Shown here piece after piece: positions 52,601 through 55,600 of a stretch of 64,000 bases of DNA. Under the pieces are notes generated by a model that had not been told where the DNA came from, searched no databases, and saw nothing but the letters and a program-made list of their open reading frames with translations. The translations under genes and the position numbers were made by a program. This DNA comes from Bugula neritina. Taxonomy: Eukaryota; Animalia; Bryozoa. Location: the NCBI GenBank assembly GCA_964035545.1, contig OZ037767.1, positions 13,687,801-13,751,800 on the forward strand, given 5' to 3'. Position 1 is the first letter of the stretch. The number at the start of each line of letters is the position of its first letter.

Positions 52601-55600
52601 AATATGTTAAACAAACGCAATCAATAAGTATGCACAGGGACAGAAAATATCAATTAACTATTTGCTTCAAGGTAGATTCTACCAGAAATGAGTTAGCTTT
52701 TAGGACAAAATTTTGCATGCAATGCATATTTGTTAGAGACTAGCAGTTTTTGAAAATTTTAATTAGTTTATTGGAACAGGAGTGTTAGAAAGAGCTTGTC
52801 CATATTTAAAAATAAGTTTACAGTCACTATCCCTGTGAGAAACCCCTGATGGAGAGGGTTTTTTACAGTGAGCTAAGGGCTTATTCATATGTGTCATAGG
52901 AGCAATCATGACTGGATGCTCTTCCTAACATCACCAATGGCCTTTATTGGGCATCGAACCTAATGATCTTCAGTAAAATTCATTAAAAGTATAGCCTAAT
53001 GTTCATAAATTAAAAATACCATAGGATAATGTTAATTGGACTGCAAACAAAGAAAACTATAATTCTTTGAAGAATAAGCCATTTATAATATCTCAACTTC
53101 AGCAGTATATTTTAAAAAGCTGTAAACAATGTATTGGTAATATATTGATTAGCACTAGTCTATAAGTCTTATACATGTAGGTGCTTTTATAATGTAGCCC
53201 TCTAACAAATAGTGCTAGTGAAAGAATAACTCCTATAAATTAAAGTGACGGAGTGAAATTTCAAAGCAGCGATGAAGAACATTGCTGAGCTTTATCACAG
53301 CTACAGCTCTTCCAGTTAAGGATAAATTGTAAACAAGAATGGGTGGATAATCTAAGGGCTGTTTAGCCATTCAGTGTTTTATACTTGACCGAAAGAAACT
53401 AGCTTGGTATTTGTTACCTAAAGGGTTCTCAAAAAGAAGTATAGGTAATACAAGAAGGCAACATATAGCGACTAGAGAGATGGGTGCAGTAACGGAAAAG
53501 CCTATGTTCTATATAAAAATACAACAGATCAAGTTTTTCAACTTGCATCCTGAAAAAATTGGTATGAAAAACTTCTGCTACTGAAATCCCCCTGTTACCA
53601 CATGGACAAGGCCTGGATCACAGAGGTAGTGAATATGCAAGACATGCATTGAGATGGAGTAGTTTCTATATACATCACAATATACGAATAAATAAGGGAG
53701 TTAATCAAAGCCACGAATTTCAGACCTATTAAAGTCAAACTTATGATGTTTAAAGATAAGCTGTGATGTGCTTCCCAGTGCAATAGATAAAAACTTGGTT
53801 TTAAAATATCAATGTAGCTATAACTATAAATAATTAAAATCATATTAAAGAGTGATGCTACAATGATAGCGTTCAACGCTATCAGTGTAGTGTGTTTATC
53901 AATGCAATTTAAGTTAGTATCTGAGTTGTATCATTTTCATATACATAGGTACACTGTGCTTCCATTAAGCTTTGAATAAATCCATACGGATGCTATATAA
54001 TGGATTTGTGGTTCTGGTTTGCATGAAATTATGGTTGCGGTTTTATTCGATGCAACTGTTACCAAATATCAGATAAAAAATTCACTCTAAGAATGCGAAG
54101 CTTGGAAACAGCTTGGAAATGGAGTAGATGTGAGCAAAATAGATATAGTAGTATTTGAAAATGAAAGATTGCATTGAATAAAACTTTCTACCAGCTATAA
54201 CAGCCCATTCTTAGAATTTACGGAATGGCTCCTACCACCCCCTTCTAAATTAGTAAATATGTTTACGATAGCTAAAGCTATCTCACTCTGAAGTAGATCA
54301 CAAGATTCCTGTGCTATGCTATTCATAAGATGCTAAAGATACTTTCTTATTTCCAGTCTCCATTTGAAAGCAAAAACTATAAACATTACCTGCAGAAACC
54401 AAGTGTGTTACAGAGAGAAATAGCCAAAGAGTTGCAAATATCCGTATTATTTCAAAGGCAGCCATATTAAGAAACGTTCACCTGTCAGGCAGCACGGCAG
54501 TGTAGCCTAAAATTATGTCTAGCTGACTCATCCATTATTAAAATAAATGTGTTTGTTACTGGCAGCATGAGCTGCCTTCATAGCTGCATAGTGAGTGACG
54601 GACCAATCAGAATGCAGGGATATGAAGAGTTGACCAATCACGAATAAGGTAAGTAATACAATACTGTTTAGGTACGGAAGGATGCGTGTTGTACAGTCTT
54701 TTATCTTCCTTAATTTAAGTATAAGATATCAATTACTGGCTGCATCACGCTCGAGTGAACTACTTAGTGTAGGAATATAATTCTAATAGCGATTAATTAT
54801 GCATGACATGCCGACAAAACACTATTTGAAATAAAGAGTTGTTAGATCTTGAAATCCAATATTTATACAAGATTCTCACAACAAGATGAGGAGCTTTTTT
54901 AAGCTCATAATAAAACACAGCCATTGATATAAAACCTCATTATATCTATTTACTGTGACCATCAAACCATTCCTACTCACTTTTACACTGACCTGGAATG
55001 TGCTACCACACTTTGATTGGTGTCATTTATTGTCCGGTGAGATTGAAATTGATTCAGCAGTACTGAGGAATAACTTTTTAATTTCAATATCATTGTAATG
55101 AAATAATAGGACCTGAGTAAGCAGAGTTGGAAATTATTTGGCAAAATTTAGTTGCAATAATTCACAAAATAATTTTTTCAGAAAGAATTGCAGCTCTAAA
55201 AGTTCTAACTAAATTGTTAAATTTATTAATAGCTAAAAAATTGATTGTCTGTGTTTAGACCAGGAAAGGCCAAGATGTAAAAACTTAGCAAATCAATTTT
55301 ATAATTGTTATCCCTGTTTTCAACTTTTGAAGACACTTATGCTTTTATTTTAGTAGGAAAATTACACAACCAATTTATTGGAACATTTCAAACAATTAAC
55401 CAATAAACGCAGACAAAAAATTCAGTAAGTTATTTATATAAAATCAAAGTAGAACCTTTACGATCTAACAGAAATTTTCAGTTGAGCCAAATTGTGATTC
55501 TAATACAGCTTATTCGTTCTTTAAGCTTAAGACTCTCTTTTTCAAACTTTCTTTGCTCATGAAAATGAGGCTGAAACTTTTTCTGTGTTGCAATCAATAT

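Follow-up and report, generated by a model that had tools for sequence, protein, structure and literature searches.

Neurexin diversity is commonly attributed to the alpha, beta and gamma promoters together with splicing, and the long alpha form is regarded as ancestral. Published work describes promoters for the alpha and beta forms, a gamma promoter of NRXN1, and alpha and gamma forms in the fly and the worm (PMC12665717, PMC10084454). More than one start is possible within an invertebrate neurexin gene (PMC12665717), and in the honeybee, exon skipping yields neurexin I isoforms that carry either one or two LNS-EGF-LNS repeats (PMC2570956). Here, we analyzed a neurexin gene of the bryozoan Bugula neritina contained in a window of 64 kb (contig OZ037767.1, positions 13,687,801 to 13,751,800; positions below count from the first letter of this stretch). 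In the intron between its EGF1 and LNS2 exons we describe a candidate first coding exon behind a putative promoter block, which would probably give rise to a neurexin starting at LNS2.

The neurexin gene lies on the minus strand of the window. Its exons were searched singly, each on its own, and the junction codon discussed below was read by eye. Laminin_G_2 and EGF_2 matches were obtained on individual exon open reading frames (ORFs), and the alternating LNS and EGF exons, combined with homology to named neurexins, identify the gene as an alpha-type LNS/EGF neurexin. In a protein search, LNS2 exon 1 matched XP_067943283.1, a neurexin 1-like protein of Watersipora subatra. This exon spans 51673-51530 on the minus strand, is phase 1-1, has its acceptor AG at 51675-51674, and is the proposed splice target of the candidate exon. 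The 3' end of the EGF1 exon (58605..58640, minus strand) has its donor at 58640/58639 or 58637/58636 (GTGAGT), phase 1 either way, which makes the EGF1-LNS2 intron about 6.96 to 6.97 kb long. The alpha signal-peptide exon (61995-61929, minus strand, phase 1, donor GTGAGC) encodes a 22-residue peptide and joins LNS1 at about 61022.

The candidate alternative first coding exon occupies 54465-54390 on the minus strand. It comprises 76 nt, that is, 25 codons plus one base (phase 1), and encodes a signal-peptide-like 25-mer ending in V-S-A. Its ATG (54465-54463) stands in a Kozak context with A at -3 and G at +4, and an in-frame TGA (54480-54478, minus strand) is found 15 nt 5' of it. At the other end of the exon lies a phase 1 splice donor, CAG/GTAATG (54389-54384, minus strand, with the GT at 54389-54388). 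The predicted junction codon combines G with TA to give Val, followed by the TGDTTATF of LNS2. In-frame entry into the shared LNS2 exon is available at the sequence level, with a phase-1 donor and a phase-1 acceptor, both here and in a paralog described below. However, all relevant exon boundaries of this gene are phase 1, including that of the alpha signal-peptide exon, and the phase match of the candidate exon to LNS2 therefore discriminates little. The peptide passed a rule-based scan for signal-peptide exons, with a mean core hydropathy of 2.09, V at -3 and A at -1. The initial annotation of this stretch had pointed to a 76-nt signal-peptide-like exon in the roughly 7-kb EGF1-LNS2 intron, with a Kozak-like ATG, an in-frame upstream stop and a phase 1 CAG/GTAATG donor matching the LNS2 acceptor at 51673, and to two boxes 31 bp apart and 140-170 bp upstream. 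Each of these elements is present in the sequence.

The two boxes, both GACCAATCA, read on the plus strand and appear as ATTGG on the gene strand. The distal box is at 54632-54640 (core 54638-54634) and the proximal box at 54601-54609 (core 54607-54603), placing their cores 173 and 142 nt 5' of the ATG. They are exactly 31 bp apart, inverted relative to the gene, and both fit RRCCAATSR, a pattern that we took as the NF-Y-type consensus and that occurs 17 times in the window versus 6.8 expected. Dual CCAAT-box (NF-Y) promoters have boxes spaced by about 31 to 33 bp, usually placed at -60 to -100, and work in either orientation. The present pair resembles them in its two RRCCAATSR boxes about three helical turns apart, to which NF-Y would putatively bind. 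It departs from them in that CCAAT pairs of this kind also form minisatellites in this genome. These minisatellites are numerous and have a period of 29 to 31 bp, with an RCCAATSA/G box in every unit and a spacer sequence that varies between arrays. The same period and box recur at G000:C1:234540-235177, C1:1551512-1551891, C1:1135497-1135774, C1:504403-504650 and C1:32204141-32204298. A constant period and box combined with unrelated spacers looks either selected or generated by some process.

Further elements precede the start codon, all on the minus strand. The most conserved stretch of the region (54490-54618) would, as we infer, represent the core promoter and the 5' end of the transcript. 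It contains an A/T-rich TATA-like run at about 54548-54535 and four upstream ATGs at 54589, 54581, 54568 and 54535. The word TGAGTCAGCTA is found at 54530-54520, 65 nt 5' of the candidate ATG. In the 216-Mb assembly this region occurs only once, and a repeat or transposon origin of the block was rejected on this ground.

Comparison with a related species provided the first line of support. Using LNS2 exon 1 as a query, we found a 91% identical fragment (P0001), which led to a 17-kb JGI contig, L002. This contig is collinear with window positions 60578-44038, with a median identity of 88% in 100-nt windows. The block surrounding the candidate exon (55050-54276, strand unspecified) reaches 93-99% identity in such windows, compared to the intron median of 88%, and is one of about 10 non-exonic blocks above 93%. 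Within it, both CCAAT boxes are unchanged, whereas the 22-nt spacer between them carries about 6 changes. Since the boxes are identical while the spacer has diverged, we regard them as footprinted. The next approximately 128 nt, from the proximal box to about 25 nt before the ATG, show a single change. In the candidate exon itself we counted 7 changes in 76 nt, corresponding to five replacements (I>V, R>Q, A>S, L>F and H>D) and two silent changes. None of the replacements puts a charge in the hydrophobic core, and L002 retains the ATG, the uninterrupted reading frame, the terminal V-S-A, the donor and the upstream TGA. Judged by this pattern, the comparison shows a functional regulatory block and supports a coding exon weakly.

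Other non-exonic blocks with 93-99% identity to L002 and no obvious ORFs were observed at 57625-56301, 53925-53776, 52675-52251, 50400-50076 and 47500-46801; these are candidate regulatory elements or unannotated neurexin exons. Searches for further relatives yielded little. An exact 21-mer of the conserved block had no match in JGI metagenome contigs, a protein scan with LNS2 exon 1 returned one 1.4-kb contig with 42% identity, and the LNS1 ORF of the paralog used as a query had no match.

The second line of support came from a paralogous gene. LNS2 exon 1 matches one other place in the genome, on contig C9 (G000:C9:7425794-7425922, 53% identity). The C9 exons, which include LNS1, parts of LNS2 and EGF, are 33-55% identical to the window exons in protein, a divergence that points to an old paralog rather than a haplotig. 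The intron between EGF1 and LNS2 is 6.7 kb long in this paralog, and the strict scan gave one match in it. This paralog candidate exon runs from the ATG at C9:7430124 to C9:7430064, comprises 61 nt, is phase 1, has the donor AAG/GTAGGG and encodes MRLLISTLFWFAGILHTHSQ. The paralog LNS2 acceptor (at about C9:7425937) is also phase 1 and compatible with it. At 169 and 200 nt 5' of its candidate ATG, the paralog has a pair of ATTGG boxes, exactly 31 bp apart and oriented as in the window. Moreover, TGACTTAGCTA is located 63 nt 5' of the paralog ATG, compared to 65 nt for TGAGTCAGCTA in the window, and the two have the word TGAsTyAGCTA in common. When anchored at their donors, the two candidate peptides agree at 5-6 of 20 residues, a likeness that is only suggestive. 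What the paralogs have in common, as far as these comparisons go, is a motif grammar and not alignable sequence.

To quantify how far chance could account for these features, we used the rule-based scan. It accepted open ATG-to-GT stretches of 14-45 codons in phase 1, with a donor matching the consensus at 7/9 positions or more, compliance with the -3/-1 rule and an uncharged 10-residue core with a mean Kyte-Doolittle hydropathy of at least 2.0. As a positive control, the scan recovered the alpha signal-peptide exons of both paralogs. On the gene strand of the window it returned the alpha signal-peptide exon, the candidate exon and a low-complexity match at 1356-1227. When the 6.97-kb intron was shuffled by dinucleotides, 6% of the trials contained at least one such exon, and about 0.25 are expected per 42 kb of gene strand. 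By itself, the candidate exon is thus only mildly unusual, and suggestive. CCAAT-N26-CCAAT occurs 1,629 times in the 216 Mb, compared to 667 times for a reversed-pattern control, and for any one stretch of 250 bp, the expected frequency of a CCAAT pair at that spacing and in one orientation is about 9e-4. With the window supplying the hypothesis and the paralog serving as its test, we obtained a joint chance for the exon and the pair in the paralog of approximately 0.0625 x 9e-4, or about 6e-5. An unused intronic ORF beside fortuitous CCAAT words could exploit the frequency of phase-1 signal-peptide-like exons in shuffled introns, and A/T-rich DNA favors hydrophobic ORFs. Nevertheless, the above-background conservation with footprinted boxes and the low joint chance of the paralog arrangement make this explanation highly improbable.

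We also considered how the candidate exon might be used without an internal promoter. An acceptor-like AG, CTGACAG/G, occurs at 54483-54482 on the minus strand, 16 nt 5' of the ATG, and the AG is retained in L002; in the paralog, a polypyrimidine-AG directly precedes the candidate ATG. The AG at 54483-54482 could serve as an acceptor for trans-splicing or within the 5' untranslated region. Alpha pre-mRNA trans-spliced to a shared leader at these sites would yield the same LNS2-start messenger. This scheme does not account for the two conserved, footprinted CCAAT boxes, whose spacing and distance agree between the paralogs, and we consider it very unlikely. An in-frame cassette exon of the alpha form was not supported in either gene. 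Read in the EGF1 frame from the nearest upstream AG, at 54483-54482, the candidate exon reaches a stop, and the 61-nt exon of the paralog would shift the frame. Because of this stop and this frame shift, a role as first exon is the only coding-consistent role that we found. Separately, a TGACAG/GT word was noted at 54481-54490, shortly 5' of the candidate start codon. The same word is present 5' of the paralog alpha signal-peptide exon (L008:3406-3420), where four copies of TGACAAG/TGACAG are found. The word may act as an acceptor or as a start-site motif.

A different possibility is that the block is a real promoter serving another transcript, such as a non-coding or antisense RNA, one half of a bidirectional pair or a small nested gene. 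On the plus strand the boxes are in the forward CCAAT orientation. A consensus donor, AAG/GTAAGT, was observed on that strand directly beyond the CCAAT pair (54646-54654); in the relative, GGTAAGT is retained and AAG is changed to ACG. A donor at this place would be consistent with divergent transcription out of the block. On the same side, the conserved sequence continues for roughly 400 bp as far as 55050, and the 195 nt 5' of the candidate ATG fold mildly better than shuffles (z = -2.7). On the other hand, we found no convincing plus-strand ORF in 54650-57600, no Rfam family matched the block, and no coding exon candidates were detected on the gene strand between 54390 and 51673. Another transcript would also leave a phase-matched signal-peptide exon in both paralogs without explanation. 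For these reasons, we judge it distinctly unlikely.

Several observations weigh against a promoter with its own coding exon. The n-region of the peptide lacks net positive charge (0 in the window and -1 in the relative), and the candidate exon changes at an approximately neutral rate, its ratio of replacements to silent changes giving no sign of purifying selection on the peptide. The four upstream ATGs in the conserved stretch would burden translation if transcription started far upstream. An nhmmer comparison of the modules of the two paralogs revealed no significant DNA homology. In addition, the genome contains an excess of CCAAT pairs spaced by about 30 bp, in part as minisatellites, and one such pair is found upstream of the LNS3 exon with no signal peptide behind it. 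This second pair, of AGCCAATCA boxes, is located at 48776-48814 on the minus strand, with its boxes 30 bp apart and forward on the gene strand, about 55-95 nt 5' of an ATG at 48722 from which an open frame continues across the LNS3 acceptor. The relative has lost the distal box of this pair, and its proximal box is altered to AGCCAATTA.

Alternatively, the block could be an enhancer or silencer conserved within the intron, to which NF-Y and AP-1-type factors would bind and which would act on the alpha promoter or a neighboring gene, with the ORF as an unused by-product. Blocks that are equally conserved and lack exon features are found in the same intron (57625-56301, 53925-53776 and 52675-52251), the non-coding sequence 5' of the near-neutral ORF is better conserved than the ORF itself, and CCAAT pairs elsewhere in the gene are not accompanied by a signal peptide. 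However, an enhancer does not predict that a phase-1 signal-peptide-like ATG exon with a donor should follow the CCAAT pair by 140-200 nt in both paralogs. An exon of this kind arises in about 6% of shuffled introns and would also have to adjoin the pair, and the ATG, frame and donor all persist in the relative. We therefore regard an enhancer as unlikely.

Together, these comparisons favor an internal promoter with an alternative first exon giving an LNS2-start neurexin, which we consider the probable explanation. It is raised above the weak evidence for the exon because of the conservation in the related species and the same arrangement in the paralog. Those two results and the sequence features themselves were observed directly; from them we infer promoter activity, a transcription start site (TSS), splicing, secretion and cleavage. 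According to our model, two NF-Y-type CCAAT boxes, three helical turns apart, would drive transcription from within the intron. The TSS would lie somewhere around 54540-54490, that is, probably 50-80 nt 5' of the ATG. Translation from 54465 would produce a cleavable signal peptide, and a phase-1 splice would connect 54390 to the shared LNS2 exon at 51673. The resulting neurexin would have neither LNS1 nor EGF1, and its mature end would lie a few residues before the first LNS2 strand. The 5' end may be trimmed and replaced by a leader; a promoter followed by outron trans-splicing would be just as possible and is covered by this explanation. An internal-promoter, LNS2-start isoform had been proposed in the initial annotation. 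That proposal has gained a conserved block with footprinted boxes in the relative and the same grammar in the paralog intron, while the isoform itself is still a prediction. As for the suggested check of exon conservation, the ATG, frame and donor are retained in L002.

We looked for further support in Watersipora subatra and in protein collections. The model XP_067943283.1 was rejected as evidence for an LNS2-start form. Its start codon is an intronic ATG immediately 5' of the LNS2 acceptor, with no untranslated region (L003:10001-10156), and it also translates a minisatellite, reading a tandem repeat as VVVAYSTLCCCRVFDSLLLSRIR-type units (L003:32699-34132). Both are apparent annotation artefacts, and we regard the model as a prediction artefact. 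No LNS1 or EGF1 exon was found in the 10 kb available upstream of LNS2 in this species. The gene strand of the 55-kb locus contains only two phase-1 signal-peptide-like exons, at L003:1494-1557 and L003:5143-5218, the second of which is 76 nt long. Both fall within those 10 kb and would be compatible, if weak, support for an LNS2-start form. A search of 1.84 billion representatives with the LNS2 exon returned only genomic ORF fragments and the Watersipora model, with no transcript-derived protein. The 48-aa unspliced ORF of the candidate had no match in protein collections, and the 49-aa ORF of the relative was not returned either. Using the Watersipora protein as a query for LNS2-start forms in other animals mostly retrieved CNTNAP and pikachurin proteins, which was uninformative. 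Among sequencing runs, a query with 48400-55000, whose 6.6 kb are largely intronic and tend to hide RNA data covering exons only, retrieved a single DNA run; its contigs were continuous genomic sequence across the region and showed no splice joints.

Three additional features of the window were noted. A very high-copy intronic repeat occupies 52804-53037, with a summed contig depth in the DNA run of about 300,000 compared to about 60-100 around it. It may be a short interspersed nuclear element, with loose ends that are tRNA-like. Upstream of the alpha start region, at 63615-63825 on the minus strand, lies a GGN/GTN simple repeat with poly-Gly and poly-Val/Ala ORFs. A neighboring gene for a secreted or membrane protein probably has its first exon at 18932-19028 on the plus strand, where an ATG exon with strong likeness to a signal peptide (MDHLATTAIILLLVLTSDA...) ends in a phase-1 donor matching 8/9 positions.

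If the LNS2-start form is real, its conservation in both bryozoan paralogs would extend by one the three promoter classes on which the prevailing view is built, and internal neurexin starts would not be a peculiarity of vertebrates or nematodes. We lean toward the broader proposal that bryozoan neurexins carry a fourth kind of start that predates the duplication of the paralogs. This start would be made up, within the EGF1-LNS2 intron, of a CCAAT-pair promoter with its own signal-peptide exon, giving an LNS2-to-LNS6 neurexin without the LNS1-EGF1 arm, possibly leader trans-spliced. Should the module be found in other lophotrochozoans, it would represent an ancestral neurexin isoform class that was lost or overlooked in model organisms. 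In the crystal structures of alpha-neurexin, LNS1-EGF1 is flexibly tethered to the LNS2-6 body. If this tethering holds here, nature would make the LNS2-6 body alone, offering a direct handle on the contribution of LNS1-EGF1. On this reading, the gene models of both loci should carry an extra first exon.

How does the predicted form relate to the neurexins already described? As in vertebrate beta-neurexin, a promoter-like block in an intron of the long form is followed by a private exon with an ATG and a putative signal peptide and by predicted in-frame entry into a shared LNS exon, and the C-terminal part would be common with alpha (PMC10084454, PMC2570956). It is not a beta-neurexin proper, which enters immediately before LNS6: the predicted entry is before LNS2, so that five LNS and two EGF domains would be kept instead of one LNS. 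The candidate private exon would also code for little beyond the signal peptide, unlike its beta counterpart. Gamma-neurexins are without all LNS and EGF domains, whereas the predicted form would lose LNS1-EGF1 only. With its exon upstream of LNS2-LNS6, it does not belong to the gamma-neurexins proper either. It resembles vertebrate neurexin-1 gamma and the short gamma form of C. elegans and Drosophila in its predicted use of a further internal promoter within the neurexin gene (PMC12665717). The honeybee forms are likewise invertebrate neurexins of intermediate length (PMC2570956), but they use the common start and the alpha signal peptide, and none has been reported to start at LNS2 from an exon of its own. 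The initial annotation had not recognized this architecture as described. In agreement, the neurexin literature that we examined gives only alpha, beta and gamma promoters, and our full-text searches did not find an LNS2-start neurexin. With good comparative sequence support, and as a prediction at the RNA level, the LNS2-start form would be a new variant on the known internal-promoter logic of neurexins.

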